Source of the DNA: Octopus sinensis
Taxonomy: Eukaryota
Length of the DNA: 64,000 nt
Reading direction: 5' to 3'
Assembly: GCF_006345805.1 (NCBI RefSeq)
Contig: NC_043012.1
Span: 5,580,001-5,644,000 of the forward strand
This document shows, piece after piece, positions 3 through 64,000 of the stretch; the stretch's first letter is position 1; each line of letters begins with the position of its first letter. A model generated the notes under the pieces. The model had not been told where the DNA came from and did no database searches. It was given only the letters and a program-made list of their open reading frames with translations. Position numbers and translations under genes: made by a program.

Positions 3-1019
3 ATCATAGTCCTCCAGGCAATAACGGAGGAATTCAAGACAGGATGCCCTTGGGAGCTCCTCTATGCTGATAACCTTGCTCTAATTGCTGAGTCGCTATC
101 AGAACTGGAGGAGAAGTTTCAGGTGTGGAAACAAGGATTAGAATCGAAGGGCCTCAGAGTCAATCTAGCTAAAACCAAAGTCGTAATCAGTAGGAAGGTA
201 GACAAATCACAAACACCTTCAGGTAGATGGCCCTGCTCGATCTGTAGAAAAGGTGTAGGTAGAAACTCTATAAGATGCACCAAGTGTAAGCTATGGACAC
301 ATAAGAGATGCAGCAATGTCAAAGGAAGGCTAACTAGGAAGATGGTTTTTGTATGTGGCAGATGCTCAGGAACAATAAACACTGAAAATGCTCTGAGACC
401 AACTTCCGTCACTTTCCAGGGAGAAAAACTAGAAATAGTTGATAGTTTCCGTTACTTAGGTGACCAAGTCAGCAGCGGGGGCGGGTGTGCTGAAAGTGTA
501 ACTGCTAGAGTAAGAATAGCTTGGGCAAAGTTCAGAGAGCTCTTACCTCTGCTGGTGACAAAAGGCCTCTCGCACAGAGTGAAAGGCAGACTGTATGATG
601 CGTGTGTACGAACAGCCATGCTACATGGCAGTGAAACATGGGCCGTGACTGCTGAGGATATGCGTAAGCTCGCTAGAAATGAAGCCAGTATGCTCCGATG
701 GATGTGTAATGTCGGTACTCATACTTGGCAGAGTGTAAGTACCTTGAGAGAAAAGCTGGACCTAAGAAGCATCAGTTGTGGTGTGCAAGAGAGACGTTTG
801 TGCTGGTATGGTCATGTGGCGAGAATGGATGAAGATAGTTGTGTGAAAAAGTGCCACACCCTAGCGGTTGAGGGAACCTGTGGAAGAGGCAGACCCAGGA
901 AAACCTGGGACGAGGTGGTGAAGCACGACCTTCGAACTTTAGGTCTCACTGAGGAAATGACTAGAGACCGAGACCTCTGGAAGTGTGCTGTGCGCGAGAA
1001 GACCCAGCAGGACAAGTGA
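3..1019 (+). mobile_element. RTE-clade LINE ORF, C-terminal part (RT palm, PHD-type finger, RT thumb/C-terminal domain); truncated by window edge; intronic and antisense to CHD1
   Basis: Frame is open from nt 3 (IIVLQAITEEFKTGCPWELLYADNLALIAES...) into ORF 123-1019. RTE hallmarks: GLRVNLAKTKV, FRYLG, RVKGRLYDACVRTAMLHGSETW, RLCWYGHVARM, GRGRPRKTW. Confidence 0.95.
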
Positions 1020-4056: not shown

Positions 4057-4199
4057 CTCCCTTGCGGCCTACACGTTGTTGTATCACTTTCTCAATTGTT
4101 TCGTGGTTGTCATCTTCCTCGTCGGCAGCCAGGGCTGCGGCAGTGACTTCTAAAAGATCGTCTGAATCAGTCTGGTTCTCAGATTCTTCTTCTTTGTAG
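4057..4199 (-). CDS. CHD1: CHD1 coding exon 7 in window (143 nt, phase 2 to 1): (S)YKEEESENQTDSDDLLEVTAAALAADEEDDNHETIEKVIQQRVGRKG, entry to chromodomain 1
   Basis: Acceptor cgtttag|, donor |gtaagt. Matches the CHD1/2 motif SYKEDEEMKTDSDDLLEV...ETIERFMDCRIGRKG (human CHD1 as recalled). Confidence 0.95.
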
Positions 4200-5254
4200 C
4201 TAAACGAAGCCATGGTAGCCATTATAGACTAACAAATGCGTTATTTCAATGAAGCGATCAATTTAAGTAAACGTACAAGCTCAGCTCTAAACAGTCTCCC
4301 CAAGTCAACAACATCCACTGTTGTTTCTCTTCACTGAGTCGTTCTTTCAGCTGAGCAACAAGGGATTACTTTAAGTCAAGTTTAAAAAGCTATGTTTACT
4401 AACAACTCTCAATTCAATGTAATGAGCAGCAATTACTGGTTCATAGTTTTACTTCACAGACAACTTCTTTATCTCCAGTTTCTGAAGTATTACAGAGGAT
4501 GTGAAACAAATCTGGATGAGATACCAATACATCACAGGCAGTCATTCTTGTAAAACAAATCCCATTCAGCACAACAAACCAATAAATCACAAAACAGTCC
4601 TCAAGTGGTCGCGCTTGATTTGCTAAAAATAGCAGCCAAATCTAACTAATTGCAGTGATGGGAAAGGCTCAGAATGCCTTTGACCAGGTCTGAACTGGAG
4701 TTAAACAACAACGACACCAACAACTTGTTACAGCAATATGATCCTGCAACACTTAAGTGAACTCTAGGATGTGACAGCTAGGCAAAGAGGGGGCTGTACC
4801 AGGGCCTGGTTGGTACCCATTTACAGTTGAGTTGATTGGAGTGATGTGAACTGAAATTACTTTCTCAAAGGCACATTACACTATCTGATGCAGGAATTGA
4901 ACCCACAACCGTATGTTTATGAGCTGAACACCCTAACCATTGGGCCATGTACCTTCACTATTTTTAAGAAAGATACTTGATATTACTGATCTGGAGAAGC
5001 ATTGTACATAATTCAGTTTTTATGTGGCACCAGCACTTCTAACCAGCCATCTCTAACACCCTCACAGTATAATTTCAGAGATTTAATTCACTAACATAGC
5101 AGGAGGTAAGTGCAATAGCCATTGAGTTCCCAGTACTTCAGCCATAAAAAACTACCCCTCGACAAAGCCAGGAGACACATGATCAGGAAAGTACTGTGGT
5201 TACAACAATATATAAGAGGAAGACAAAAATTAAAGGGGTAATTGTAAATATTAC

Positions 5255-5401
5255 CTGACTTTCTTCCTAATGTTTCTTCTAGAATGGCGTTGTTCTGCTT
5301 CATCATCACTATCTGAATCTGAAGAGTAGCTTTTCTTTTTCCGAGATCTTTTGGCAGCAACTTTTCTTTTATTTGTGCTTCGGCTTGAGCGACTACTTTT
5401 T
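5255..5401 (-). CDS. CHD1: CHD1 coding exon 6 (147 nt, phase 2 to 2): KSSRSSRSTNKRKVAAKRSRKKKSYSSDSDSDDEAEQRHSRRNIRKKV(S)
   Basis: Acceptor tttttgcaatcag|, donor |gtaata; phases match both neighbours; basic/acidic segment preceding SYKE as in CHD1/2. Confidence 0.92.
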
Positions 5402-5518
5402 CTGATTGCAAAAAGATGAAATTGTCAGAGAAATTAAAGAAGCAAAATTCGCATATTTCCTTTTCCCTTTTAAAATAATTTTGTTCCTTCCACTATCCCA
5501 TATATATATATATATAAA

Positions 5519-7019: not shown

Positions 7020-8440
7020 CTTCATCATCATCATCATTTAACGTCTGTTGTCCATGCTGGCATAGATCAGATGTTTTGACCGGGGCTGGCAAGCTGGAAA
7101 GCTGCACTAGACTCCACTCAGATTTGGCATGGTTTCTACAGCTGGGTGTCTTTCCTAATGCCAACCACTCTGAGAGTGTAATGGGTGCTTTTACGTGCCA
7201 CCAACACAGGATAATGCCATAGGTCCAACACTAGAAAGGTGCTTCTCATAAGCCACCAACATTGGCCACTTTGCCTCTATGAAACCCCAACGCTTGAAAG
7301 GTGCTTTTTACGTGCTACCAGCACAGGTGCCAATTACTTGGCTTGACAGGTCTTCTGAAGCACAGCATATTGCCAAAGGTCTCAGTTACTAGTCATCGCC
7401 TCTGCGAGGCCCAAAGTTCAAAAATCATGCTTCACCAACTCATCCCATGTCTTCCTGGGTCTACCTCTACTAGTTTCCCTCCACAATTAGAGATCAGCAC
7501 TTCTTTACACAGCTGTCCCCATCCATACACATCACATGACCATACCAGCGCAGTCGTCTCTTTTGCAAACCACATCTGGTGCATCTTATGCCCAACATTT
7601 CTCTCAAGATACTTACACTCTGTTGTACATGCATACTAACATTGCACATCCATCGAAGCATACTGGCTTCATTTCTTTCAAGCCTATGCATGTCCTCAGC
7701 TGTCACAGCCCATGCTTCATTGCTGTGTAACATAGCTGTTTGCACACAGACATAATACAATCTGCATTTCACTCTGAGGGAGAGGCCCTTTGTTGCCAGA
7801 AGAAGAAAGAGTTCTCTGAACTTCACCCAGCCTATTCTTGTACTCACAGCTATGCTCTCAGAGCATCCACCTCCGTTACTAACTTCATCACCTAGGTAAC
7901 GGAAGCTGTCTACTACCTCTAGCTTTCCCCACTGGCAGTTGATGGAATCTATTTTCTGTACATTTTTGGCATTTATTCTACCTGTGCATCTTCCACACAC
8001 AAAAGCTACATAATTATTGCAGCTTTTTTTTCAACAAAAACAATAACATCTTTAAATGATTATTCCAGAGCATATTCACCATCTACTTCAATTACTGCTT
8101 CCCATTTGCTTGGCAGACGGTCAGACCATCATTTAAAGATGTTTTTGTTCAATATTGTTATTGATTTTTGTTGAATAAAATTTGTTGAAAAAAAGCCGCA
8201 ATAATTATGCACCAACCCAATATTTTCCTCTGATGTTGCAGCACCTTCAATGTGTCCATAGCTTATACCAGGTACATCTTATGGAGTTTCTACCTATGTC
8301 TTTTCTACAGATCGAGCAGGGTCATCTACCTGAAGGGATTTATGACTTGTTTGCCTTCTTACTTACTAAGACTTTGATTTTTGCTAAGTTAACTCTAAGG
8401 CCCTTTGATCCTAGACCTTGCTTCCATACCTGAAACTTCT
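7020..8440 (-). mobile_element. Degraded, 5'-truncated RTE LINE copy, interrupted by a mariner MITE at ~8003-8221
   Basis: ORF 7494-8000 (CGRC...FRYLG...RLRWYGHV) and 8225-8440 align to the 1-1019 copy; RTE tail at 7020-7210. Confidence 0.9.
8003..8221. mobile_element. Mariner MITE (same family as 19018-19266), one end deleted, nested in RTE
   Basis: Ends ...ataattatgcaccaacccaa|ta; internal DRLPSKWEAVIEVDG transposase remnant on the minus strand. Confidence 0.85.
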
Positions 8441-19266: not shown

Positions 19267-19483
19267 TATATATGTATAAAAGCAGCCATGCTGGAGCATC
19301 ACATATATATACATATATATGCTGGAGCACCACACACACACACACATATATATGGAGAGAGAGAGAGAGAGAAGAAGAGACAGACAAAGAGAATGAAGTA
19401 CACTTTCATATGTCCAGTCATACAATCAGCTTTCTTTGTGTGTTTTGAACTCAAAATGAAAACAAAAATAGTCAAAAACTCAC

Positions 19484-20210
19484 ATCTTTTAATTCTTTCT
19501 TGGAACTGCGTTTCGTCCGGGCAGGTTGCTGTGGAGAACCGCTGGTATCATGAGAGTAGGAATCAGAATTTGAACTGTTGTCATCGCTGTTGTCCTCCTC
19601 GCTGCTGTTGTCCTTGCTCCGATCGTCACTCTCATCACCACTGTTGTCTTTCTCATCGGAATCAGCTTCTGCTTTGTTATCCTCCTCCTCCTCCTCCTCG
19701 CCTTCTTCATCTTCATCATTGCCATCATTATCAACATCTACTTTCTCATCTTCCTCATCATCATTGTTATCATCATCATCATCACCACCACCACCACCAT
19801 CATCATTGTCATCATCTTCATCATCATCGTCGTCATCTTCTTCCATTTGCTCTACTCCAGTAGCAGCTGCGGTAGCAGATGTTTCTTCTTCCTCATCATT
19901 TTCATCATGTTTCTCATCATCATCGTCGTCATTATTATCATTATCATCATCCTCATCCTCATCCTCATCATTGTTATTACTCTTGTTATCATTGTCATCA
20001 TCATCATCATCACCATTGTCGTCATCATCATCTCCATCATCAGCATTGCCATCGTCATCAGACTTGGCAGATTTCTCAGAATCAGAACGTGCCGTGCCAG
20101 TTGAGGCATCATGGTTTTTGGTTTCATTTTCTGAGTTTTTGCTGCCTGCTGAACTGGAATCAGAGTCAGAGCTGCTGCCAGAGTTAGATTCTGATTCAGA
20201 ATCAGAGCCA
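19484..20210 (-). CDS. CHD1: CHD1 coding exon 2 (727 nt, phase 2 to 0): Ser-rich then poly-Asp/Glu tract ending ...PARTKRSSKKELKD
   Basis: Acceptor tatctctccatag|, donor |gtgagt; 242 codons open in frame with both flanking exons. Confidence 0.92.
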
Positions 20211-21896
20211 CTATGGAGAGATATAAAAGACAGAATTCAGAAACAGATACAGATAAAGTACACACCTAACAGGCACACCCAAACAATACCCCTTTGTCCA
20301 TGTATGTAAGTGATCTTGAGCTAGTTTAAGTGTCTGTATACTAATCTATACAAAATATGGTTCCAGGTGAATTCATCTACAACAATGTGTGGTTGTAGGT
20401 GTGCGTGTGTTGTTGTATATGTGTGTATTGTTGTATACGTGTGTATGTGTGTTGTTGTATATGTGCGTATGTGTGTGTGGTTGTATGTATATGCATGTGA
20501 TTGTATGAGGGTGTATGTGTATGTATGTGTGTGGTTGTAGATGAATTGTATCCATAGGTAAATTGCTGTAGATGGATTGTTGAAGACAAATTCGCTGGAT
20601 ACCATAAAATACATCATTCTACATAATGATATTACTAACGTTCATTTCATTAACCAGGAGAATCAAATAGTAAACCAATCCATTTTAGAATTTTAACCTT
20701 GGTGGAATTTAAACTCTGACTGTAAAGACAGACGAAATACTGCTAAGCATTTTGCCCGACATGCTAACATTTCTACCACTTTGCCACCTTATAATAATTA
20801 TAGATTGGCAATTCAATGAGGAGAGATATAGAATAGCACAAATATCAGTTTATTGTGTTGTAACCCCAGCAGTGCACTATTGAAAAAGGAGCAGGTCATT
20901 AATTAGCAATAGAATTTACAGAGGAAAGGAAGATCCTTAAATTTTTTTTCATAAATATGGATCATCATTATCATTGGCAAGGGGCCTGGCATCGACCACG
21001 TTCAGAATACATATAAATTTTTTTTAAATACCCTCCTCTCAACATTTCCCAATATAATTCAATTGCTAATTAATGAGGCGCTCTCTTTTTGACAGTTGTT
21101 AACATAATAAACTAACGTCTGTGATGCTCTATAACTATTCTGAGAAGAGAGACACAATACATTGATATGATGAACAGTCAGCCTACAGTTACTGTGCTGT
21201 ATCTCTTGAAGTAACACTTGTTGCTTTCCCAGTTTAAAACTCTAAACAGGTATTCTGGAAATAGGTTAAACTCAGAACAATAAGCAGCAAGAGAACAGCA
21301 TTTTATTAGCTTGTGATGCTAAACTTATCAGGCTGAAGCCAGTTTTTGCCTTTTGTCCTTTGGCATCATTACAGCTTTCCAACAGGACAATCACGGTTTA
21401 CAAGAAAGTAGTGTATGTGTAAGGTAATTTCTTTTCCAAATGCATTTTTTTGCAGATATGCAAATCTTTTACCTATATATACACACACACACACCAGAGT
21501 AAGCACCAAAACTATCCAACAAACAGGAACATGAACCTCTGAATAACAGATTTTTGTGATGCTTTTGCAGCTTTAATAATGAAGTACACACACACATATG
21601 TATATGCCAGGCCCATCTGACTGGCTCCTGTGCCAGTGGCATGTAAAAAGCACCCACTACACTCTCAAAGTGGTTGGCGTGAGGAAGGGCAGCTGTAGAA
21701 ACCTTGCCAGATCAGACTAGAGCCTGGTGCAGCCGCTGGCTCTCCAGACCTCAGTCAAACCGTCCAACCCTTGCCAGCATGGAAAACAAACGTTAAACGA
21801 TGATGATATATATTATATATGCATGTATGTATATAGGTATGTTGGTGCAAACAGGGAAAATAGAACTCAAAATATGAGTATATATGCATATTTTTA

Positions 21897-29039: not shown

Positions 29040-29295
29040 ATCATCAGCAGCAGCATTTTAACATCTATTTTTCTAAGGTTGAACAGAATTCGCTGAGGCA
29101 GATTTCCTACAGCTGGATGCCCTTCCCCTTGTCAACCCTCACCTGTTTCCAAGTAAGGTAATATTTCCCCCATGACCAGACATGTTTTCACAGAAGATTG
29201 GAAACGAATGACACTGTTTGCAAAACAATGACATTTATTTACAACTATTAAATGAAGTCCAGGCAAGGAGACAGTAACATACACACACACACATA
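29040..29295 (-). mobile_element. Diverged short interspersed repeat with RTE-like end (also 29940-30160 -, 33350-33575 +)
   Basis: Shared cacctgtttccaag-aaggtaatatttccccatg-ccagacatg core. Confidence 0.6.
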
Positions 29296-29345
29296 CAATG
29301 ATACAAAATGGTAACAGCAGAGATTTGAATTCAATCCCAACAGAG

Positions 29346-29461
29346 TGGGATTGAACCTGGAACCATGTGGTTGGAAAACAAACTTCTTACCAAGCAGCCT
29401 TGCCTGCAGACAAACACTCCCAAAAGCTAGACCTCATGAAAAGGGATAATGCAAAAGAATT
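29346..29461 (+). repeat. 116-bp perfect direct repeat of 31762-31877
   Basis: Identical sequence spanning a SINE head plus ~55 bp of non-SINE flank. Confidence 0.95.
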
Positions 29462-37931: not shown

Positions 37932-38110
37932 CTGGAATGGGTCTAAAAGTTAGTCGATCAGCTAGATAGAGATGCTGCAAGTAATGTTGGTTAAGATTTT
38001 CGGCTCAAGCTGGCGTATTTCTTTAGCAGCAAGTGTCGGTCGTAAGGCAGCGTCGTGTCGATGCAAGCTGAAATATGGCGGCCATCTTTAGAATGTATGT
38101 ATGTGTATGC
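37932..38110 (-). promoter_or_regulatory. Candidate distal promoter / first exon (P1) with double YY1-type site at 38071-38089
   Basis: aaatatggcggccatcttt contains AANATGGC on both strands; strong donor ccag|gtaaaa at 37931; CpG-rich. Confidence 0.5.
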
Positions 38111-38199
38111 AATGAGTGTGTGTATACGTATTAGTGTGTGTTTCAGTCGTCTTGTCTTTCAGGCGAGCAGTCCGACGATAATAGCCAAGGAATTGTGGG

Positions 38200-39544
38200 A
38201 TAGAAGCTAGTATATTTGAACAGGGGAGCCCTCTGCCTAGCTATGACTGTGACGTGGTATTTGCTTTCAGTCATATACAATAGTAATAATAATACAAGCA
38301 TGCACACACGTAGTGTATAGTGAAGAATTCACTACTTGGCCGTCTAGCACAGACTATGACAATAATTGCTGCTTGCCATCAATAGTGGAGCAAGAAGCAA
38401 CTCTTGTACATTCTCCATTAGACACAAGCAAAATCCAACTTGTTGATTGATGCCAGAGAGCCAAGCAGAAGCATTTATCCAACATATTTTAAATGTACTT
38501 TTGGTCAGTTGAGGTTGTGCAACCAAGAGAGTAGATGTAGATCAATGGCAAAACAAATAGGATAAGACCCAATTTAATAAATCCTTAAAGTTATGTTCTG
38601 AGTGTATATTGCTTGAAGGAGACAAACTCATTCAAGAAGAATCATGAAATGGTCCCCAATGAATAAATATGGAATCATGAACATTTGAAGTCTGAAAATA
38701 CCAAAAGTGCCATGACAATGGAATCAGAAAACCCATTTTGGACCCAAGGCACTGCAACCCAAGTACAACCAGAGGGTGACTAGATAATTGCTAGTTTACC
38801 CTAAAGGTATGGACCCGGAAGTGAACATATGAATGATAGGTTTTAAACCATCTCCCCTATAAACTGACATGAATATAGTTTTAAACCATGTCCAGAATTC
38901 CATAAGAATGTATGCATACATAGACAAATGTCTGTAAAGAACAGAAGACGAGTTTCTTGTAAAAAAAACAACTAGGAATGTATTGAAGGGAAGTATTCGT
39001 ATAATCAACAATTACTATGTATGTAGTGTAAACACACAAGTCATCACAATTACTTGCTACCCTGAATGTGGGGGTAAAACTGGAATTTATTTAGAAGCCC
39101 AGATCAGATAATTTCTACACTTCCTTATATTTCAGGAAAAGGGGAAAAAATTGAACACAAAATTGTAAATTCTGAAATACAAAAGCATGTAACACAATAA
39201 TAAAATGTAAAAAGAAACTAAAAGACAATATTCTTCAATTAAAATGTTTTTATTTATATAAAAAATAATAAACAAAACAAGTAACCACGTGGGTTAATAG
39301 AATATCAACAACATATGCAACAAATGGTAACAATGCAATACATCACATAACATTATCTCACATTGAAGACATGTAAATATATGCATATATTATATATACA
39401 TGTATTATATATGTATAGATGGATATATATGCATATACATACACTAAAGTGTGTATATATGCGTATATACACAATGTAAGTATATATATATATATATATA
39501 CATATACACACACTGAAGTGTGTATATATGCGTATATACACAAG

Positions 39545-39582
<38 letters not shown>

Positions 39583-40128
39583 CGTGTTTCTTCACAGCAG
39601 AAACAATTCCCTATACAAACGCAATTGGCACAAGCTATATACATACAATAGCTAATTCAATGCAGAAAATAAGTGTATATACACTCTACATTACAAATAC
39701 AAATGTCACAAGAAACCGATGCATATAACAAGGGTATATATACAGTGTATAAAATTCTACAAAATCAACTCAAATACAGAAAATTGTAAATCGATCAAAC
39801 CCTATTAACGATGAATAGAAGCAATGTTTTAGTTCAATACAAGCACTACAGTTCCTAAAATGTGGCCAATATATAGATATGGCCATTGATAACATTTTTT
39901 TCGAGAAAATATTTTTTTTCGAAAAGAATTTTATCCTCACACCTGATATAGATATATTTATACATATATATCATCATCATCATTTAACGTCCGTTTTCCA
40001 TGCTAGCATGGGTTGGACGGTTCAACTGGGGTCTGAGAAGCCAGAAGGCTGCACCAGGCCCAGTCTGATCTGGCAGTGTTTCTACGGCTGGATGCCCTTC
40101 CTAACGCCACATATATATATATATATAT

Positions 40129-40175
<47 letters not shown>

Positions 40176-40515
40176 TACAGTCGCATATATAAAATTATAA
40201 TTACATCGGTATCTCACAACTCACAGCCACTAGCTTTCATCATCATCATCATCGTTTACCGTTCGCCTTCCATGCTGGCATGGGTTGGACGGTTTTGAAA
40301 TATGCTGGCCAGGCAGGAGCCTGCACCAGACTTGTTTTGGCATCGTTTTCTACGACTGGATGCTTACAAGTATACACACACAAATATATATTAACAATTT
40401 TTCCACGTTTTCTGGAAAGCTTGGAAATGATCACTTAACACATATCTAACCAGATATATATATTTATATATATATACATATATGGGTAAAACCAGTGTGT
40501 ATGTATGTGTATATA

Positions 40516-40575
<60 letters not shown>

Positions 40576-40819
40576 TATACATACACACACACACTGGTTT
40601 TACCCTTATTTTCTAATCTTATTCTGTCAGCATTTACCTCAATATCACTATTTCTTTTCAGTTTATAGTTTTAAATTACAAACTTTTGAAGCGCAACAAA
40701 GGCACACACATGTATATACACATATAGAGACACGCACATATATACAGGTACATTAGCATTCACAAGCGAACACATCCAGATGCACACATATCACACTATA
40801 TCCACAAATACATCAATAT

Positions 40820-40856
<37 letters not shown>

Positions 40857-42763
40857 CTTGAATTTACGAGCACACCCAACTCCACACTAACACAATCGTT
40901 TCGAACCCGGATTCACTGGGGCAGTTTCTGATGCGCCAAGCGAATTAAGAACACCATTTCCCCATGGACAGGACGCCAGTCCTTCACTCCAGCTCCAAGT
41001 TAACCTGACAGATACTCTTTCTGAAGTGACCAAGACAGGATCCACAAGAAATAAAGAGTTTTGATCAAGGACAACGCTTTGCTCAGGAATCGAACGCCCG
41101 ATTCTACGATCGCGATTTCAAAACTACGACCATTCATTGAAATATTACAAACAGATACTTATATATACCTAATTACCAACACATTCATATATAACAGTAG
41201 ACTAATACAATAATTAACGAGTTAATACCAATTAGATATAAACACACATATTTAACCAAATAAACATACGTACACATATATATACACACCGATATACAGA
41301 AATATGCATTTAAAGGTACAAAATGAACATACGCTTATATGTACATATTACACACACTCACATGCGCAATTCTTAAATTAAAACGTCTATTTACAATCAG
41401 AGAAAATACTGTATTGTTATATAATTTCATGAGAACTATCAATAACCAAACATTTACTAATAACGCATGTAAAATGTGATGCTGTGATGTTCATGCCTTC
41501 CCCACCAGCAGGATAAGGAATTCATTAATAGATTTAGAACTAATTTTGGACCTTTTTCGCTTTAAATAATATAGTAATGATATATACGAAATGTATGGCT
41601 TACTGATTTAATTTTTTTATATATAATTATATATCTCTGAAATCGATAAAAAAATGTATATTTTTTGTACGAAAAATTACATTTTTTCTCTATCGAAAAA
41701 TTGCAAAAATTAGAGAAACGCTAAAAACTTTTAAAAAGCCTCTAAAAAAATTAATTAGCAAAATGCTATATAATTAAGTATATACTATTTATGGATAATA
41801 AAGCAGTGATTAAAATTAGAAATCTTACGACGGAAGAAGTCAATGACAAATGAAGGTCATAGCGCCATATTTGTGATGTCTTCCTCCTTTCTGACGATGC
41901 TGAGCTTGATCACTGCAAATCTTCGTCTCTCTCAATGTTATACAATAAATATAAGTACGGACGAATAAATCCAACTAATTTTCTATCTGAAAACATAAAT
42001 TATTAATCTTTAGACCGAAAATACCAAGAGTTTAAAAAAAAAAAAAGGCGACGAGGAATTTCGACTTTTCTAAAAATATGCAAATTATGATAAATTTCTG
42101 GAAATAAGTTTTCGTAAAGCTATTATAAATGTCGATGGTTTTATAAAACAAGACCCACATTAAATGATCAGGTCTCATCGGACGTTTAAATCAGATGTGT
42201 ACGATTGTATATATGTATGTGCATACATGCATATATAGATGCGTGTGTGTGAGAGAGAAAAAAGTAAAGAATACAATATGAAATAATGAAGATTATCGCC
42301 ATTTTCTTTGCTCTTTCTTCATCAGAGTCGCCCCTAGTTTATTGTTGAAATGAGTTTGAGATGTGAGCTAAGTGTTTATAATACATAGATAAATCTAGGA
42401 GTGGTAAGAATTAAACATTGTGAACCTTTACGAGTGGATCTGTACAGATATACATACGTAATGTACCCAAATTTCTTGACTGTGTCCTGTATGCAATTCC
42501 ATTCGTTTCTTTCTTCATTTTAAAATTTAAAACCAGACGAAAGTTCCACGCGTTTGCCTTCATACAACAAGTGATCGCGGATGTGTGTAAAATTCAACCG
42601 ACAGCCACTTGTTCGTATAACAACTGCAATGGATAATAAAAAGAAGAGGCGATATGTTTGTTCTTGGTTTTCTTCTGCCTCTTACCGCACTGTCCGTCGA
42701 AGAAAGCTGGTAAAGCGAGCAGCAGTTAATCGAATACATGTCCTCACAGCTCCGAGTTGCCGC
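38200..42763 (-). ncRNA. Predicted spliced lncRNA in tandem upstream of CHD1 (exons 42686-42763, 41829-41986, terminal exon from 39171); 5' end possibly near 43.0 kb
   Basis: Acceptors tctcattcttttcag|, ttatgttttcag|, gcttttgtatttcag|; donors |gtaaga twice; exon 41829-41986 has stops in all three frames. Confidence 0.45.
40860..41130 (-). mobile_element. tRNA-derived SINE
   Basis: B-box-like gggcgttcgattcctgagcaaagcgttgtcc on the minus strand. Confidence 0.6.
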
Positions 42764-44579
42764 CTGAAAAGAATGAGATAGTTGCAAGTCTTGGATAGAA
42801 AACCAACAACGGGAGATAACTCTCTCACTCACGAACAATTGTTTTACAGCTTTAGTTTTTATTTTTCTATCAATAAATGTTCTATCAATACTTCAGAATT
42901 ATATTTTAATGAAATTTATAGAAATTCCTTCAGTTTGATTTTAAAATATTTGAATTTTTTCAAATTCGACAACATTTTACCTCAAGCTATATGACGTCAT
43001 GTTGTTGATGTGCCCTGTAACATGCATAATTCAATGGTCACAAGTTTTGAAGTAAAATCACAAAATAGTCAATTTTTTTCATAAAACTTTGTATATGGTT
43101 ATAATGTTTGTAACTTATCATTGTAATTTTTATAGAAAATTATTAATTTTTGTTTCTATAACTGTCTGAATAAGTGATATTTCTGCAGGACTGGTAACAT
43201 GAATACAAAGAAATTAACATGGAGGAAGGTTTGATAAAATTGAAGTTTTCATTTATTTATTTGTTTTTATACATTGTACACAATAATAATGAATATACAG
43301 CAATAAAACCTTTAAAAATTTCAAATGATTTACCAAAATTAATTCCATCTATGCTGAACTCGTTTCAAAAACGTATATCTTCAAATATTTGGAAATATAA
43401 GAGTATATGCAGAAACGGGGTTTATTATGATGTTAAGACTGATTTATGAAAGTACTGAAGTTAAAAGCATCAAAAATTATTTATTTTTCTCATTTGTGTC
43501 TAATTTAATGTTATTTTAATGCGAGAAAATAACGAAGAATAAAGATGCGTGTGTGCAGATGTGTGAGTGCGTGTTCGTGAGACAGTCATCTACAATCGAA
43601 TACTTTATGTTATTAAAATCCCTTAAATATTAATACCAAGAAGCAACCCCACTAAAATCTAATGAATAAATATGTATGAAACTTAATCATCAGTGTTTGT
43701 AAACGAATAGTCTTAAAATACTAGAAATAATATGAACTTGCATCAATGCAAATGGCTACCGATTGAAAGCCGACGCGAAAACCTGACATATTTTGTCATT
43801 TTCCTGCAATTCTCAGGAACATTAGATCACAAACACTTTTAAATCATGCGAAATGGTCACCTCTAAAATTAATAAACCGAATATACTATTAACTTCTTGC
43901 AGACGAAAGTGTGTTTGATTGAATTATCCCTAAATACACAAAATGTTATAAGCTGATATTATTATTTCATCAATATTTCTTGATAAAAACTTCTACGACT
44001 ACAAACAATTCGATTTTTTTTTTTAAATCTAAGCAAAGTATAAATTACTAACGAAAGGAGATTATAATTAAAAAATCACATCTTATAATAAATACATTGT
44101 ATCGTAAATGAAAGTAAAGGAAATGCTTCATGGTGTCTCGTTTAGCTTCAGTTTGAAAGCTGCCAATTCGATAATATATCATTTATATATTGACCTTACG
44201 GCTATTTATGATTATATATCTATATATTATTTAACATTAGTGATATACTTCATCTGATTAGAAGAATAAACATTGAGAAAACTCAACTCAAGCTAGTAAC
44301 AACGAATAAGTCGGACATTTTATTAGGTTTGGTGTCTAAAATTGTGATCAACACAAACTTTCATTCCAGCGATGTTGCACAGGGTTTCATGGTCTTATTC
44401 ATTTATTGATACAATCCTTATAAACTTCTAAATGTTGGAATGTTTCATAACACTTAAATATTCCTACACATTGTATTGCTATGAAAAAAAAAATAATTAG
44501 ATCAAGTACATGTTTATGTGTATAATAGCTGAGAGAAGTTAACTGCGTATATATATTTTCAGTGTTCATGGCTGTATAT

Positions 44580-48715: not shown

Positions 48716-51474
48716 AGGGGAGCCTGGTATGCATGGGCGACTGCTGGTCTTCCATAAACAACTTTGCCCGGACTTGTGCCTCGGAGGGTAACTTTCTAGG
48801 TGCAATCCCATGGTCACTCATGACCAAAGAAGTTCTCCTCCGATCTTATATTTGCTTATAGTTACTCGTAAGGCTTATCTGAAGACATTTAAAACCCTAC
48901 AGAAAACATGTTTAATATATGTGAAGGCTCGGTACATATTTCCAAAAGAGATTTAAAGGTCAATTTGTTTATTAAAGTGTCATTTTGGGCGAAAATTTGC
49001 CTATTTTTCAGCGATAATGCTTTCCTTTTATAGCTAAAGTTCGTTGACTATGATTCTCAGCATGACATTGCTGGAACGACAAACTAGACTTATAATTGTT
49101 ATATAACTGTATGCAGCCCTTCTGAAGGGGTTTGATTACTGAGAAACAGACTCACAGCTTTGGCAACTTTTCTTACCACAAAATCATTGATCGTTGTTTC
49201 ACTTCTTGGCTTTTTTTCTAATTCTGCTAGAGGCCTCAAATCCAAAGACGGAAACTATAAGAGGTCGCTTGTTTTACCTGGTAGTAACAGAACCGAATCT
49301 CCTTTGAATCATAGACTATTGTTTTGTGGTGAATCTTGCAGGCATGAAACGGAATTCGATCCACCATAGCCAAATTTAAATTAACACTTCAACAGAAATT
49401 TTCTCACGGTGGAGCAATCGTTTTTCTGTGACAGCAGTTTTACATTTGCCAGATTGCCTTAGCTAGGCCGAAATAATGTCTTCATCACTTGACCTTTCTA
49501 ACCTCTTCTATTTCACCAAAAGCTAGAATTAAGATAACAAGACAACCAACTAAATCTATTGTTCTCAACGATATGTCTATCCTTCTGGATAGTTATAAAA
49601 GCAAGAACCCCAAGCAAAAATCAGTCACTTGGTGACAACTGGGTTAGTCGGCTCATGACAACTCAATCCGTTAGTTAATGAATGACAAACTCGAATCATA
49701 GACAGCTACCATCAGCTAGGGAGCAGAACGCTAGAATCCTGATCCAAAGCAAGGCAGCTACTAAAGACAATGGTCAAATGGAGAAATGAAATTTACTGTC
49801 AGCAGCTGAGACCCAACTTCCCACACCCTCTAACTTTATCTACTCTGCACATTACCATATCTCTCCCTATGGTTTACTACTACAATTCGAACACACAGGC
49901 CGAAATTTACTTTTTTACTTCGCACGCTCTAGGCAAGGTATATTAGATATAACGGGTAAAAATAAATATTTCCTTCAGACTTCGTGCATTAATCATCTTT
50001 CACCTTTACATAATGGCAATCAACGAAGAACCAATCCTTACAAACTGATTACGACTCCGACATTTCATATTATTGTTTACTAATTAATTCCATCTGTTAC
50101 AGTTTTATACAGGAGATCAGCAGACAGAATGGCCTAAATATACAATGTCTAAAAAATAAGAAAATATAAACGTAGTTGAAATGCCGCTGATCATACGTCA
50201 GTTCTTTTGGAGTGAAACAACAACCAGTTCTGATAGAATTCGATTGATTCTAATTGATTACTGATTCTAGGTGATTATTAATGAAAGTCCAAATGCCAAC
50301 CCAGGGAAAAGAGCTGTTATCGTAAGTGTAGGAAAAAGACCAGGATTATTGATTTACATAAAACCTGATAGAGGTAAAGCTTAGAACGCGGGTATTCTTT
50401 CCAACGTCCCAGGACGTTTTGTAAGAACTTGCTCATGTTTTATTTTACTTGGTCATAAGGCGGTGAGCTCGTAAAATCGTCAGCGGATCAACAAAATATA
50501 TAGCAGCATTTCTTCCATTTCTTTACGTTCTGCGTTCAAATTCCGCCGAGGTTGACTTTGCTGCCATTCATCCTTTCGGAATCGCTAAAATAAGTAAATA
50601 CCAGTTGAACACTGGCGTCGATGTAATCAACCTAGTCCCTTTCTTGAAATAACTAGCATTGTGCCAAAGTTTGAATCCGTTTTATTTGAGCATAGTTCGT
50701 GTCTTTGCCTCACTAGTCGTTGCCCCACCACACTCCGGTTTGATTGACGTTGCTGAATATGTTTTGATCAAACAGACTCTCTTAGGCATTAGTTGATTTC
50801 AAAACCACTTTCCCTTATATCCTTCAATATCTCCAATTCCTCTCAACTTCACTTTTCTTTCTGTTATACACCTCTAAATCTCTTCACTTGTCCAATGTTT
50901 TTCGTTTCTTTTCTCTTTTTCTTTTTTCTTTTTCACAACAGACTTTGTTTTCCATTGATTTCATCAGCAAATTCCGCTTTTGCCTCCGATGAACGTACAA
51001 ATAATAGTTTCGAAAATTTACATCATCAGTGCTCATCCATGATAATACCCCGAGACAAAATTTTCACTTGGCAGTTTTGAAGTCCTACAATATTTCAACT
51101 TCAAACTTGATTCTAGGCTTGCCTGTCGCTAATAAGGTGCACTGGGGCGGCACTGCGCCCTCAATATTCAATGGTGCACGCTCAACTTTACTCCACTTTA
51201 GCATTATTACAATTTAGTACCAACTCAGAATATTCTGAAGCACCCCTAAGCACCAAAGTCTGGCGACGGGCCTGATTTTAGAGACATTTTGCTTCACCAA
51301 TGATTTCTGAATGCAGCATAAAAATGGCTGACGCTAAAATGTAACTGGATTTTTCTTTTTTTAGCTTATCAAATAAACAATTTTAGATGAATATAAAGGA
51401 AGAAGTATTGGTTTTAGGTACTTGATATCACGCTCAAATACGAATGATTTTTTTTCTTTTGGTTATATATTTAT

Positions 51475-53010: not shown

Positions 53011-53634
53011 CATAATATGCATTATTTCAGCCTTCTGATATGCGCCAATATTAGATGATCAACACCACGCACCACTATCTATAGATGGAAATAGCAACTA
53101 TACCGAGAAATAATGTTTGTCGCCATTTTACTACTATTTTTAACCCCAAGAGGACGCCTCCTCTAGTTGGTTATTGATACAATCTGCACCCGATATACAT
53201 TGCAAGCAGAGGAGCGAATATCTACCATCTTCTAGCAACTTGACAGGACCACCAGACCAGGATGGTTTCGATCTCTTTTTGCCTATCCTCAGTGGTGGAC
53301 GCCCGTCCACTAGAGGTAGCAGTAGTTCACTCCAGTTTACAAAATACAAAAAAATGAGTGACAATCAATCACTTATACTTTCACTTCAGCTTGACATCAA
53401 CACACAAGAGTTACATGCTAAGAAGATACAAGTGAAATAATTTTAGTGTAAAGAGGAAGACGGTTTCCAAGCAGGGAAGAAATCAACCAAATACTACTCG
53501 GGATTCTAAAAGCTACAACTTTACAATGACTGGGCCTTCACTAGCTATTACCTGCGCTTACACAATATGAAAATTGTGGCAGGAAACTCTTGGCAGGGCA
53601 ATACTCAAGAGATGTAGATAAAGTCTGCTACAGG

Positions 53635-54077: not shown

Positions 54078-56466
54078 GCTACAGGTACTAGTTCTCAACA
54101 AGGAATTACAGAATAACATTCGAATGAATAGTCCTTGTTTTCTCTTCGTCCTCACACCTCGAACTCGGGCAGATTCTTAGTCAACCCTATTTGTGATGCT
54201 CAGGTGCTGGCTAAAATCGTGGGGTTGTCCAAGGAAAAGGTTAGGTATAATTTGGAAATTAAAGTAAATTGTAATTTTTTTTTTATGTAGGAGAGAATGT
54301 GATGTGGTCTTAATAATTTTCAGAGAGATTTGGCTGCCACATTTAATCACAGAAGATGTGTAGCTATTGTAAGTTAGAGTAAAGTGGAAATTGAAAAAAA
54401 AAGAAAGCAAGTTTATTGGCTGTTAAACGAAAACCGAATCAGGCACGAAACTGTACAAGCACCTAAGTTCTTAAGCATTTCAAATTTGCTGTTGTGGTGT
54501 TTAGAATATTCTCCACGCCTGCTTCATACTTTTTTCTTTAAATGACAACCCAATCTCTGCTAGATTTCACCCTACTGTCTTTTAAAAAAAAGTAGGAATG
54601 ATGCACTTGGTAAGATAGTCCACGATGTGTCTTTAACCATAGGTTAGCTTAATGCGGGCTGACCTAGAGCTAAATATCAGAAATAACGGTTTGTTAATAA
54701 TGAGTTTCTTTCGCTAAGAGAAGAGTTTAATTTACTGATTCGTTTCTGGTATATGACTCATACATAAACGGTGTATCGACTCCGAAAAGCAGAAAAGATG
54801 AAGGTGAACTTGGTAGGATATAAATTTGCTATGCACAAGGACAGAATTACATATCGTAGGACGTTCAGTCCGAGGTTCACTCGTATCTCTCTCATCATCA
54901 TCCTTTAAAAAATATTACAGCAGTTAACATTGTCATGCGCATAAATCTGCTACAGATACTGGTACTCAACAAAGAATTACAAGATTGTGTACAACATTCA
55001 AAAGAATTTTTTAAAATTTCGTCTTCCTCGAAATATTGCACCTAGAATTCAAGCAAATTCTTTATCTATCCTATTTGTGGTGCTCGGGTGCTGGCCAAAA
55101 TCTGGAATTTTCCCTGTAAATGATCAGTTTCGTTATGTAATTAGCATGTGAAGAGTCTCACGCTCCACTGATCTAATTATGTGAGTTGAGTAATAGAACA
55201 AATTAGAAACTTGTTTAAACCTACAAATTAGTTGGGATTTTCTCTTCACTTTCTATTTTCTCACGTTTGGCAATTGATTTATTTTGAAGATCAACTACTT
55301 ACGTATGGCCCTAGAGCCAATAAGGAATTTTATGACACCAGTTCAACTAAGAACACTGACTAATTAGCGCATCATTGCTCCAATTACTTCTTCAGTCTCT
55401 ATCCGTTAGTAACTGTATGCCAATGAATCAATTGAGTTCTAGCATTTCATTTCATCTTCAAGTCGTCTCCCACTTCTCAACGTTGAGAGTTTGGTGACAC
55501 CTCGAAAAGTATAAGAGAAGATTCCACCTTATTACAATTTCGCTTTTCGCCAAACAATTTCGGTTTTCATACATTCTCTTTAAAAAAAAAGATAAAGAAA
55601 AAGGGTTATCTTTACATGTATCGGCACTAGCTCACACAAGAAGGATTCTTCGTCCGAAGCTACGATGAGCGTTCATTTGTTCGATCAGTTTGAATTCCTA
55701 ATTCAGAAAAAATAACGTATCACAAGTCAAGTGTTCCACAGACACGTGTGTCCATAACGTACTCACCAGGCTGAATCAATGTGGTGTAATGTGATAAAGC
55801 TAGGCCTTTGAATTACGGATACGATCTAAAGAGAAAGGAGGAATCAAAAGACCCCTAACCAATACTGGATTGGGGGATTTTTTGCTTTGTCTTTTTGTCA
55901 ACCTGGAAAGGATGGAATACAAAATCGACCTCAGGGAGATTTGAACGCAAAGCCGATACGAATAACGCTTTGCGGTCCTACCAGTTAGCCATCTTAACTA
56001 CACGCAAGCAATGAGTCAATGAAGTGCCTCCACGTCAGGTACTCGGGCTATATGCTGTCTTTTATGACACTTATGGTTAGCATACAGTTTACTGTCATAA
56101 AACAGTGAAAATAAATTGTCCTAAAGAATGGAAAGTAATGGCAGCGATAGAAAGAAAATAAATAACTCTACTCTCGATCGTACACGCGAAGCACTTTGGT
56201 CCGTTATAACCCATCAGATAGTGTCAGAAACACGTTTGATGCTCAATGGATAGGGTTCGTATGTGGGTCTCGACAACTTCTGTACTCATAAAGTTGTCAA
56301 CCATTCCCTTATCCATACACAGATTATAGAAGGACGATGGGTGCTCGCGGAGAATAAAGGCGATACAGATTTTTTGTTTTTTAGGACAACTCACTTTCAC
56401 TTTTTCACGATGGTAACGTGTTTACCCGAAAAACTACCTTGGATGTTTTAAGTAGTGCGGGCCACC

Positions 56467-61286: not shown

Positions 61287-62049
61287 AATGACTGAAACAA
61301 GTAAAAGAGTAACAGATTATTAGTATTGTTATGCCTGAGTGAAGACTGTATCTGTGTATGTCATCATCATCATCATAATTATCATCAGCATCATCGTCAT
61401 TTTACATCCACAATGACATGGTTTGGACGTCATCATGGTCTGAGTTACCTCCCATGAAGAGCTACAATTTCTAATGCGTAGGTGCTCGTATGTGTCATCT
61501 GGCTTGGTTTCTATAGCTTGATGCCCTTTCTAACACCAACCACGTTACTGAATGTTCTGGGTGTATTTTCTTGTGGCACCAACACTAGAGAGGCTGAATG
61601 GCCCTTGGACCTCATAAGTCTATGCATTCTCTGCCAATTTAACAAACCACATCACCATGTTAAATGGTTCTGAAAGGTCTTGTACACAGTAAATGTAAAT
61701 TTGGAAAAGGGACAGTGATTACAGAAAGGCTAGAAATGGTTATTACGGAATTGGGGGTCAAGGAAGCGAATGTAGGTATACAGAGAGTACTTAATAAATA
61801 TATGGGTCCGACCGATCGTGGCCGTTGCCAGCCTCGTCTGGCACCTGTGCCAGTGGCACGTAAAAAGCACCCACTACACTCACGGAGTGGTTGGCGTTAG
61901 GAATGGCATCCAGCTGTAGAAATACTGCCAGATCAGACTGGAGCCTGGTGCAGCCACCTGGCTTCCCAGAACATAGTCGAACTGTCCAACCCATGCTAGC
62001 ACGGAAAATGGACGTTAAACGATGATGATGATGTTGCCATGAATGAATG

Positions 62050-63615: not shown

Positions 63616-64000
63616 ATATATGAGTGTGTGTGTCACATAACAATACTTTGTATACGCAAGAGTGGGTGTACATGTGTGTGTGTGCGTGTCAGTCACCTGA
63701 AATATCTATCCAAACGATCTTTTGTTAAGACAGGATGCCAAAAGGAGTGAAACTGCTTCTCTGACAACTTGACAAAATCTACTTCAACAGAATCCTGTAT
63801 AGGAGGAAAGTGAAGAATGGGAGAGAGTGTGAGAGAAAAATAGGTGTTGTTCCAGACATTTCCTCAGAAAATTGTTAGTTGTGTCTACATATTCAAGTGC
63901 AGACACTCGGGCAGATAAACACGTATCCTCATGCGCACACACACAGAGGTTTATATAGAAATATATATACACATGGACGGAATGATAGACACACACACAC

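Follow-up and report, generated by a model that had tools for sequence, protein, structure and literature searches.

The interval considered here, within a window of 64 kb of octopus DNA that was analysed as a whole, is the 5′ flank of a CHD1-type gene, and most likely contains a second, distal promoter-like block at approximately 41.8-43.0 kb on the strand of CHD1. Such a block would drive non-coding transcription of the minus strand across a repeat-filled stretch and into a CpG-depleted block by the CHD1 promoter; we infer the transcription, the strand and the end point of this unit alike. A non-coding minus-strand unit at approximately 42-43 kb, be it an independent long non-coding RNA (lncRNA) or a set of distal leader exons of CHD1, has slightly less than an even chance of being real. 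The CpG pocket, a T>A skew, GC-rich blocks and a cluster of YY1 motifs keep it plausible, but these hints cannot separate the lncRNA from leader exons. In vertebrates, the lncRNA CHASERR represses the neighbouring CHD2 gene in cis, and the sequence-only reading of this DNA had placed a mollusc counterpart in the interval. As the splice-like signals and AUGG words are at chance level, a CHASERR-like regulatory RNA upstream of octopus CHD1 is possible and should be put no higher than that.

The downstream minus-strand gene is of CHD1 type, as had been proposed: an open segment at 5254-5424 together with the exon at 4057..4228 aligns with residues 76-158 of duck CHD1 (44%, 91 aa, E 8e-13). This exon (donor score 11.7; upstream boundary approximate) directly precedes chromodomain 1, and an acidic and Ser-rich N-terminal coding exon, also on the minus strand, occupies 19484..20210, with the open frame SGSDSESES...SKKELKD between acceptor ctctccatag/T and donor GAT/GTGAGT. 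The putative non-coding exon 1 and core promoter of CHD1, with a predicted transcription start site (TSS) at about 38.1 kb, are located at 37932..38105 on the minus strand, where donor CAG/GTAAAA (last exon base 37932, score 6.5), the YY1 palindrome AAGATGGCCGCCATATT at 38072-38090 and a surrounding CpG cluster at 38001-38341 are found. An acceptor-like site inside this exon, CATATTTCAG/C, scores 5.5 with 38067 as its first exon base, and upstream exons may splice in through it.

All coordinates previously given for the upstream interval were exact on re-inspection. The strength attributed to the splice signals, which were scored with a consensus splice-site matrix and ranked by percentile, was found to apply to a single exon of the model. 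The block at 42686..42763 on the minus strand (78 nt, non-coding, GC/CpG-rich) is the best exon-like block, with acceptor TTTTCAG/G scoring 11.6 (99.93rd percentile, i.e. in the top 0.1%) and donor CG/GTAAGA scoring 8.6 (99.25th percentile, in the top 1%); its GC content is 0.54 versus 0.32 in the flanks, it includes 7 CpG, and a search of the protein collection returned no match to it. Putative exon 3, at 41829..41986 on the same strand, is ordinary in its signals (acceptor TTTTCAG/A, 5.9, 93.7th percentile; donor TC/GTAAGA, 3.7, 87.9th percentile), about 400 candidate exons per strand scoring equally or better within the 64 kb. It also contrasts in composition with its flanks (GC 0.37 versus 0.24; 6 CpG; GC 0.44 in its 3′ half), and could equally be a first exon beginning near 41.9 kb. 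That it is closed in all three frames is uninformative, as 84% of 158-nt windows are. The remaining sites are the acceptor of the putative last exon, TATTTCAG/A at 39171 (score 8.2), and the donor GAG/GTAAAA near 43 kb (last exon base 42981; score 5.5, 95th percentile).

Among the acceptor-donor combinations listed for the 64 kb, 13 on the minus strand and 10 on the plus strand have both sites at 8 or above, some of them using one common donor; such comparable pairs, common on both strands including a plus strand with no known gene, count against the distal unit. Further strong minus-strand pairs (49177-49277, 55767-55902 and 63697-63794) carry no coding signal, and none of the equally strong upstream candidates in the window exhibits the GC contrast seen in the two blocks of the interval. 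The spliced model is non-coding, with a longest ATG open reading frame of 50 aa. No protein or Pfam signal was found across 38-64 kb, no coding exon was detected within 43-64 kb, and no Rfam family or tRNA was found in the upstream region. Neither the candidate exons nor the terminal block yielded an open segment with a match in a protein collection including Octopus vulgaris and O. bimaculoides, a negative that is uninformative because the coding exons of CHD1 itself also lack a cephalopod match there.

Further promoter-like features, all circumstantial, accompany the donor-bearing GC/CpG-rich blocks. The YY1-core motif AANATGGCG has four matches in the window versus 1.3 expected, a count reached in 2 of 100 shuffles, and three of the four fall within 38.07-42.31 kb. 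Two of them are minus-oriented and inside the candidate unit, namely AAAATGGCG at 42297..42305, between two putative exons, and AATATGGCG at 41863-41871, in putative exon 3 and 34 nt upstream of its donor. The CRE/ATF site described earlier as TGACGTCA at 42992-42999 is a perfect palindrome, ATGACGTCAT (42991..43000), and the sole copy in the window; it is not enriched, 86 of 100 shuffles containing a match with at most one mismatch. Located 11 nt upstream of the proposed exon-1 donor, it cannot serve at once as a promoter element further upstream and as the neighbour of a donor within exon 1. In minus sense, a 366-nt CpG-free stretch of 24% GC (42995-43361) lies upstream of the CRE, unlike a typical housekeeping promoter, which counts against the distal block; over 42.8-43.4 kb as a whole, GC is 0.24-0.26 with 2-4 CpG per 400 nt.

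The interval had been called largely repeat-free, a description that fails at 39.37-41.1 kb, and simple-sequence masking alone covers 12.8% of the interval. The stretch at 39377..40856, within the putative last intron, is filled with TA/TG microsatellites (39377-39579, 40108-40169, 40454-40583 and 40829-40856) and two SINE copies (39953-40109 and 40237-40363), which have at least seven relatives elsewhere in the window; sub-threshold Rfam matches in this stretch are microsatellite artefacts. In minus sense, T exceeds A: the skew is 0.19-0.25 over 38.5-40.0 kb and 0.11-0.19 over 41-42 kb, compared with 0.034 for the body of CHD1 and about 0 past 42 kb. The values of the upstream unit amount to only 1.5-2 SD of 500-nt windows.

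The unique, CpG-depleted and (in minus sense) T-rich block at 38331..39330, the region of the proposed last exon, has no similar copy elsewhere in the window, and no ATG open reading frame of more than 43 aa is found in 39171-38200. The seven minus-strand ATGG words reported there are present within the range given (at 38903, 38889, 38851, 38736, 38713, 38418 and 38379), and the accompanying caveat was well placed, five copies being counted on the opposite strand; there is no enrichment (5.2-5.3 expected, P = 0.28), and 11-15% of the 972-nt windows within the same 64 kb hold at least seven. Moreover, the two AUGGUUUAAA copies derive from one local 16-nt duplication (15/16 identical, spacing 38 nt), so that two of the ATGG words are not independent. 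The AATAAA hexamer is likewise present (39091-39086) but at chance level, about one per kb per strand; located 80 nt past the 39171 acceptor and upstream of all seven AUGG words, it would, if used, leave all of them outside the RNA. An alternative minus-strand poly(A) hexamer, ATTAAA at 38578-38573, combined with a stronger acceptor at 38931 (score 10.2), would define a 377-nt last exon with five ATGG, three of them within its first 85 nt. In AT-rich sequence of this kind, chance yields AUGG words, closed frames, an AATAAA and splice sites such as those of exon 41829-41986.

The block at 38.33-39.33 kb, which adjoins the putative CHD1 promoter, holds 5 CpG in 1 kb (observed/expected, o/e, 0.18; 0.94 and 1.22 on either side), the lowest of any 1-kb window upstream of 34 kb (Poisson P ~1e-6 against an o/e of 0.9); the o/e is 0.42 over the CHD1 body, and about 1 near the CHD1 promoter and at 40.8-43 kb. 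In Octopus bimaculoides, methylation is found in the bodies and the 3′ ends/transcription termination sites of constitutively expressed genes and not in intergenic DNA or transposable elements (PMC9476566). By this pattern, the pocket looks like a methylated 3′ end, belonging to a transcription unit with its first 3-4 kb unmethylated. Both the pocket and the YY1 cluster were observed post hoc. A second patch poor in CpG, at 61.4-63 kb, is not associated with any obvious gene.

Taken together, the strand shared with CHD1, the GC/CpG contrast of the exons, the scores of 42686-42763, the YY1/CRE motifs, the CpG profile, the skew and the non-coding model count for a distal unit, which may take either of two forms. 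A short tandem lncRNA ending at AATAAA 39091 or ATTAAA 38578, 0.45-1.0 kb before the CHD1 start, is rather doubtful as a specific form; if it exists, ordinary promoter occlusion or read-through, interference with the proximal promoter and occasional fusion transcripts would be expected. Tandem transcriptional interference as in yeast SRG1-SER3 and close tandem human genes (PMC8972054) offers a likeness, in that read-through could occlude the CHD1 promoter, conditional on an upstream unit predicted to end at this distance from the TSS. The second form, in which the upstream RNAs would be joined to CHD1 by splicing and supply it with alternative 5′ leader exons, is unlikely when taken singly; besides 38067, the downstream exons of CHD1 offer candidate acceptors for it. 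It would match alternative distal promoters in having a GC/CpG-richer block with a strong donor 4.6 kb upstream on the same strand, YY1-core motifs at both sites and the acceptor-like 38067 inside ‘exon 1’, but it would leave the strong acceptors and poly(A) hexamers of 38.3-39.2 kb unused.

The most serious competitor, which we regard as distinctly possible though below an even chance, is that nothing gene-like is present, the interval being untranscribed or noisily transcribed intergenic or regulatory DNA, the model having been built from chance words and the CpG-poor block being a relic (for instance, of a former insertion or of local methylation). The chance-level ATGG, frame and AATAAA counts, the abundance of exon-3-quality candidates, the strong combinations on the gene-less plus strand, the similar CpG-poor patch at 61.4-63 kb and the lack of Rfam, tRNA, protein or Pfam signal over the regions searched all fit it. 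Nonetheless, it leaves unexplained why the CpG pocket lies exactly against the promoter, as well as the GC/CpG contrast of the exon blocks, the clustering of YY1 motifs and a T>A skew that is sustained in minus sense. An improbable further alternative is either a distal CHD1 enhancer bound by YY1 and CREB/ATF and giving an unstable enhancer RNA, as the clustered YY1-core motifs and the CRE might suggest, or the terminal exons of a same-strand gene starting beyond 64 kb. The very strong 42763 acceptor implies an upstream exon, none stands out nearby, and strong exon-like pairs exist further upstream on the minus strand, but these have neither GC contrast nor coding signal in a region with no detected coding exon.

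The weakest reading, very improbable, is the one originally put forward, i.e. an independent multi-exon lncRNA with AUGG-controlled termination that stops shortly before the CHD1 TSS and represses CHD1 in cis as a true counterpart of the CHASERR-CHD2 pair; CHASERR-family membership is supported by nothing tested here. Invertebrates have one CHD1/2-subfamily gene, so that the homology idea is coherent. The predicted geometry would also fit: CHASERR (LINC01578/1810026B05Rik) shares its strand with the CHD1/2-subfamily gene directly downstream, <2 kb from the TSS of that gene (PMC7798263, PMC6841665), and the octopus candidate would lie likewise next to a remodeller gene of this subfamily, with putative ends near 39065 or 38555. 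The octopus model is, moreover, multi-exon and non-coding, its terminal exon follows a long pyrimidine tract, and the 38931-38578 version would concentrate five ATGG in its last exon. In contrast, CHASERR has five exons and a very G/C-rich first exon (PMC7798263, bioRxiv 10.1101/2025.05.28.656657), whereas the octopus candidate is a sequence-only model of four exons whose putative first exon, in the region of 42.8-43.4 kb, is AT-rich, although the G/C criterion may not transfer to an octopus genome that is AT-rich overall; its neighbour is a single CHD1-type gene and CHASERR's is CHD2. AAGAUG/AARAUGR/RRAUGG motifs are over-represented at the start of the CHASERR last exon, with AAGAUG/AARAUGR (RRAUGG) at 2.1 versus 0.45 expected in vertebrates (PMC7798263, bioRxiv 10.1101/2025.05.28.656657). 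In the octopus block, there is no AAGATG, one AARATGR (38739) and two RRATGG among the seven ATGG, and none of the end-point models shows enrichment (P 0.08-1). Finally, the invertebrate positional homologues mentioned in the sequence-only reading find no backing, CHASERR being described for vertebrates only in PMC6841665, PMC7798263 and bioRxiv 10.1101/2025.05.28.656657 and a full-text literature search having found no report of an invertebrate homologue.

The present sequence leads as far as a plausible non-coding unit or distal promoter upstream of CHD1 and no further; such features are ordinary in animal genes. It is highly unlikely that CHD1 dosage in the octopus is tuned in cis by an independent, spliced and polyadenylated lncRNA ending 0.45-1.0 kb before the start site of the gene. 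If this were true, a CHASERR-type tandem RNA/remodeller circuit would exist outside vertebrates, and would either predate the vertebrate CHD1/CHD2 duplication or have a convergent origin. CHASERR is among the few lncRNAs whose knockout is lethal and which are tied to a human Mendelian disorder; a demonstrated mollusc counterpart would show that control of remodeller dosage through a tandem RNA upstream is either ancient or recurrent, and would add a second, independent system for work on its mechanism.

Upstream of the minus-strand CHD1-type gene of the window, the candidate unit (putative minus-strand exons 42686-42763 and 41829-41986, the latter being 'exon 3', with a donor at about 42980 for exon 1 and a terminal acceptor at 39171) is best accounted for, with confidence that stays a little below even, by non-coding minus-strand transcription that would start in a distal promoter-like block (about 41.8-43.0 kb). 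This account is placed first because of a CpG block, a T>A skew, the GC contrast of the exons and the YY1 motifs, the corresponding CpG, skew, exon-GC and YY1 observations being all post hoc. The non-coding RNA arising from the distal block could have either of two fates. It might end at hexamers within the CpG-poor block that abuts the CHD1 promoter, yielding a short tandem lncRNA, which is possible, if rather unlikely; or it might splice into CHD1, for instance at the acceptor-like site 38067 or at the next CHD1 exon, so that the upstream exons would be alternative leader exons of that gene, a proposal that we regard as slightly less probable still. Alternative first exons are, a priori, a much commoner arrangement than a tandem lncRNA.

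The CHD1-type gene itself is recognized from the open segments 5254-5424 and 4057-4228, which together match duck CHD1 residues 76-158, i.e. the stretch immediately preceding chromodomain 1 (44% over 91 aa), and from a long open frame at 19484-20210 (minus strand) corresponding to the acidic, Ser-rich N-terminal exon. The latter is of extreme low complexity, with long Asp/Glu/Ser/Asn runs, and, on either strand, several frames of the surrounding stretch (19472-20309) contain long ORFs. A candidate start codon lies at 29183 (MSGHGGNITLLGN), within 29143-29215 (minus strand), and is followed by the strongest donor of the window (score 12.9); the phase of this segment matches acceptor 20210 of the acidic exon, leading to MSGH...GN/SGSDSES, which resembles vertebrate MNGHSDEES. 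The assignment is only tentative because the surroundings are partly repeat-derived (SINE 29340-29461). The window as a whole is AT-rich and packed with TA/TG microsatellites and SINE copies, and LINE reverse-transcriptase/PHD-finger ORF fragments (123-1019, plus strand; 7494-8000, minus strand) lie within the CHD1 introns. Across half of its length the first of these shares 91% identity with a protein of Octopus vulgaris, and it is 79% identical to one of O. bimaculoides, which puts the window within the genus Octopus. It is reasonable to place a candidate CHD1 promoter near 38.1 kb, given a YY1-type palindrome (AAGATGGCCGCCATATT), a CpG cluster at 38001-38341 and a donor (CAG/GTAAAA) at 37932, and the CHD1 TSS is inferred to be at that position.

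The CpG o/e ratio is 0.42 in the CHD1 body (1-34 kb) and 0.96 over the promoter together with the first 4 kb (34-38.33 kb), as would be expected for a gene-body-methylated, constitutively expressed invertebrate gene. Immediately upstream, the block 38331-39330 contains 5 CpG in 1 kb (o/e 0.18, P ~1e-6 versus its neighbours), including a 475-nt CpG-free gap (38341-38816), with CpG-normal DNA on both sides; it is the lowest-CpG 1-kb window of all DNA upstream of 34 kb and is T-rich on the minus strand. Farther upstream, at 40.8-43 kb, the ratio rises to 1.22. In O. bimaculoides, methylation is found on the bodies and 3' ends of constitutive genes, with intergenic DNA and transposons largely unmethylated, and in one gene class the first third is unmethylated while methylation increases toward the TTS (PMC9476566). 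By analogy with this pattern, the CpG-poor block resembles a methylated 3' portion of a minus-strand unit whose start would lie 3-4 kb upstream. An origin of the block from a transposon was considered and rejected, as it has no other copies within the window and neither terminal inverted nor long direct repeats; the idea that 40.8-43 kb forms a 'CpG island' was also abandoned, this region being not clearly distinct from a generally unmethylated-looking domain at 34-47 kb. A second CpG-poor patch is present at 61.4-63 kb (o/e 0.18-0.33 amid CpG-normal DNA), where it overlaps a SINE (61892-62032).

With simple repeats masked, the minus-strand T>A skew is 0.19-0.25 at 38.5-40.0 kb and 0.11-0.19 at 41-42 kb, whereas the CHD1 body shows 0.034 and DNA past 42 kb has a value near 0; in the two skewed stretches the excess corresponds to 1.5-2 SD of 500-nt windows. 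The strand asymmetry of PAS hexamers at 39.2-43.0 kb (5 minus, 14 plus) was dismissed as independent evidence since the skew alone predicts it. Both putative exons stand out in composition, GC being 0.54 against 0.32 in the flanks for 42686-42763 (7 CpG) and 0.37 against 0.24 for 41829-41986 (6 CpG), a contrast that is absent from other equally strong splice pairs farther upstream. The YY1 core AANATGGCG occurs four times in the window (38072-38080, plus strand; 41863-41871, 42297-42305 and 53121-53129, minus strand) where 1.3 are expected, a count reached in 2 of 100 shuffles. A 4.3-kb span at and upstream of the CHD1 start (38.07-42.31 kb) contains three of the four, including two in minus orientation inside the candidate unit; the copy at the inferred CHD1 TSS belongs to a palindrome, so that either strand can be read as a YY1 site. 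The motif at 41863-41871 precedes the 41829 donor by 34 nt, a layout that mirrors the proximal CHD1 promoter, so that 'exon 3' may in fact be a first exon.

Close behind transcription from the distal block comes the null explanation, to which we give a substantial share of our belief, that the gene model has been assembled from chance signals. Indeed, the coordinates of the sequence-only reading are exact on re-examination of the sequence, but their significance is overstated. When every GT and AG on both strands of the whole window was scored with a generic metazoan matrix, the splice signals described as strong proved excellent for exon 42686-42763 (acceptor 42763 and donor 42686 at the 99.93rd and 99.25th percentiles), but ordinary for exon 41829-41986 (93.7th and 87.9th percentiles, with about 400 equal-or-better candidate exons per strand). 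Among the acceptor-donor combinations listed, both sites score 8 or more in 13 minus-strand cases and in 10 cases on the plus strand, which is without a known gene. Exon 41829-41986 is closed in all three frames, as claimed, but so are 84% of the 158-nt windows here. Similarly, an AATAAA is present in the putative last exon (the block downstream of acceptor 39171), at 39091, but this hexamer turns up at a rate of about one per kb on each strand anyway; furthermore, it is only 80 nt past the acceptor, so that its use for polyadenylation would leave the seven AUGG words (38376-38903) all outside the RNA. The palindromic CRE/ATF site at 42991-43000, 11 nt before the donor suggested for exon 1, would be part of that exon and not of a promoter. 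Nor is the interval largely repeat-free, 39.37-41.1 kb consisting of microsatellites and SINEs; a GC/CpG-rich segment at 40880-41130 (minus strand), inside the putative intron and with one copy in the window, resembles by eye a tRNA-derived SINE. The supposed AUGG enrichment disappears against first-order Markov simulations matched to the dinucleotide content of the sequence (7 ATGG observed, 5.2-5.3 expected, P = 0.28), and at least seven ATGG are found in 11%-15% of all 972-nt windows across the 64 kb. Two of the seven fall in one 16-nt local direct duplication (38840-38855/38878-38893, 15/16 identical, 38 nt spacing, minus sense GGAGATGGTTTAAAAC/GGACATGGTTTAAAAC), which is the reason for the two AUGGUUUAAA words that had been singled out.

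That the region is instead a distal enhancer, or carries the terminal exons of a gene beginning beyond the window, is improbable, and against the latter, searches of 43-64 kb revealed no coding signal: an upstream coding gene with the candidate exons as its 3' exons was rejected for want of a convincing ORF and with Pfam matches in 0 of 10 segments. Further minus-strand exon-like pairs do occur upstream (55767-55902, 63697-63794 and 49177-49277, with splice scores reaching 12.5 and 11.4), with no GC contrast to their flanks and no Pfam match or convincing homologue. The pair 63697-63794 has one open frame with a protein-like peptide (DSVEVDFVKLSEKQFHSFWHPVLTKDRLDRYF), and the protein-like 56-aa open segment 63696-63863 gave no more than weak matches spread over multiple stretches outside its exon-like portion. 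In the protein collection, the acidic CHD1 exon retrieved nothing because low-complexity words flooded the candidates, a query combining CHD1 exons with every open segment from the candidate exons brought up nothing beyond weak matches to bird CHD1, and exact look-up of the 71-aa 'last exon' ORF, the 124-aa acidic ORF and the 225-aa RT ORF found no record. As this collection, which has octopus entries, returned nothing for CHD1's own exons, its silence on the small ORFs of the candidate is weightless. The O. vulgaris locus L001 is an unrelated LINE copy next to a nuclear-receptor gene. Rfam gave no match at the gathering threshold over the whole window and, with E up to 1, only microsatellite artefacts (e.g. 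mir-297, mir-466) at 37.8-43.3 kb; a tRNA search found none.

CHASERR, the vertebrate tandem lncRNA upstream of CHD2 to which the candidate had been likened, is defined by its location within 2 kb of the CHD2 TSS and by five exons, the last one carrying AAGAUG/AARAUGR motifs (later written RRAUGG; 2.1 versus 0.45 expected) clustered at its start, and the homologues described are vertebrate only (PMC6841665; PMC7798263; bioRxiv 10.1101/2025.05.28.656657). A full-text literature search for CHASERR with 'invertebrate' found no invertebrate counterpart reported. The geometry of the candidate would fit that of CHASERR if the RNA exists, and the spliced model is non-coding (longest ATG ORF 50 aa, no homologues found). 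However, the model has four exons instead of five, and whereas the first exon of CHASERR is very G/C-rich, that of the candidate, with its promoter, is 24-26% GC with a 366-nt CpG-free gap. The motif signature is likewise missing (AAGATG 0; AARATGR 1, the window background being 0.77 per kb; RRATGG 2 of the 7 ATGG), and none of AAGATG, AARATGR and RRATGG is enriched under any of four end-point models. One defining feature is thus shared (non-coding) and three are lacking (exon number, G/C-rich first exon, motifs). A genuine CHASERR-type circuit, which would be a small subset of the tandem-lncRNA case, is very improbable. The sole testable component of the CHASERR reading, the motif signature, fails. 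The pay-off of a CHASERR counterpart would be notable, if true; the present feature, if real, would amount to a non-coding upstream unit or a distal promoter of an ordinary kind.
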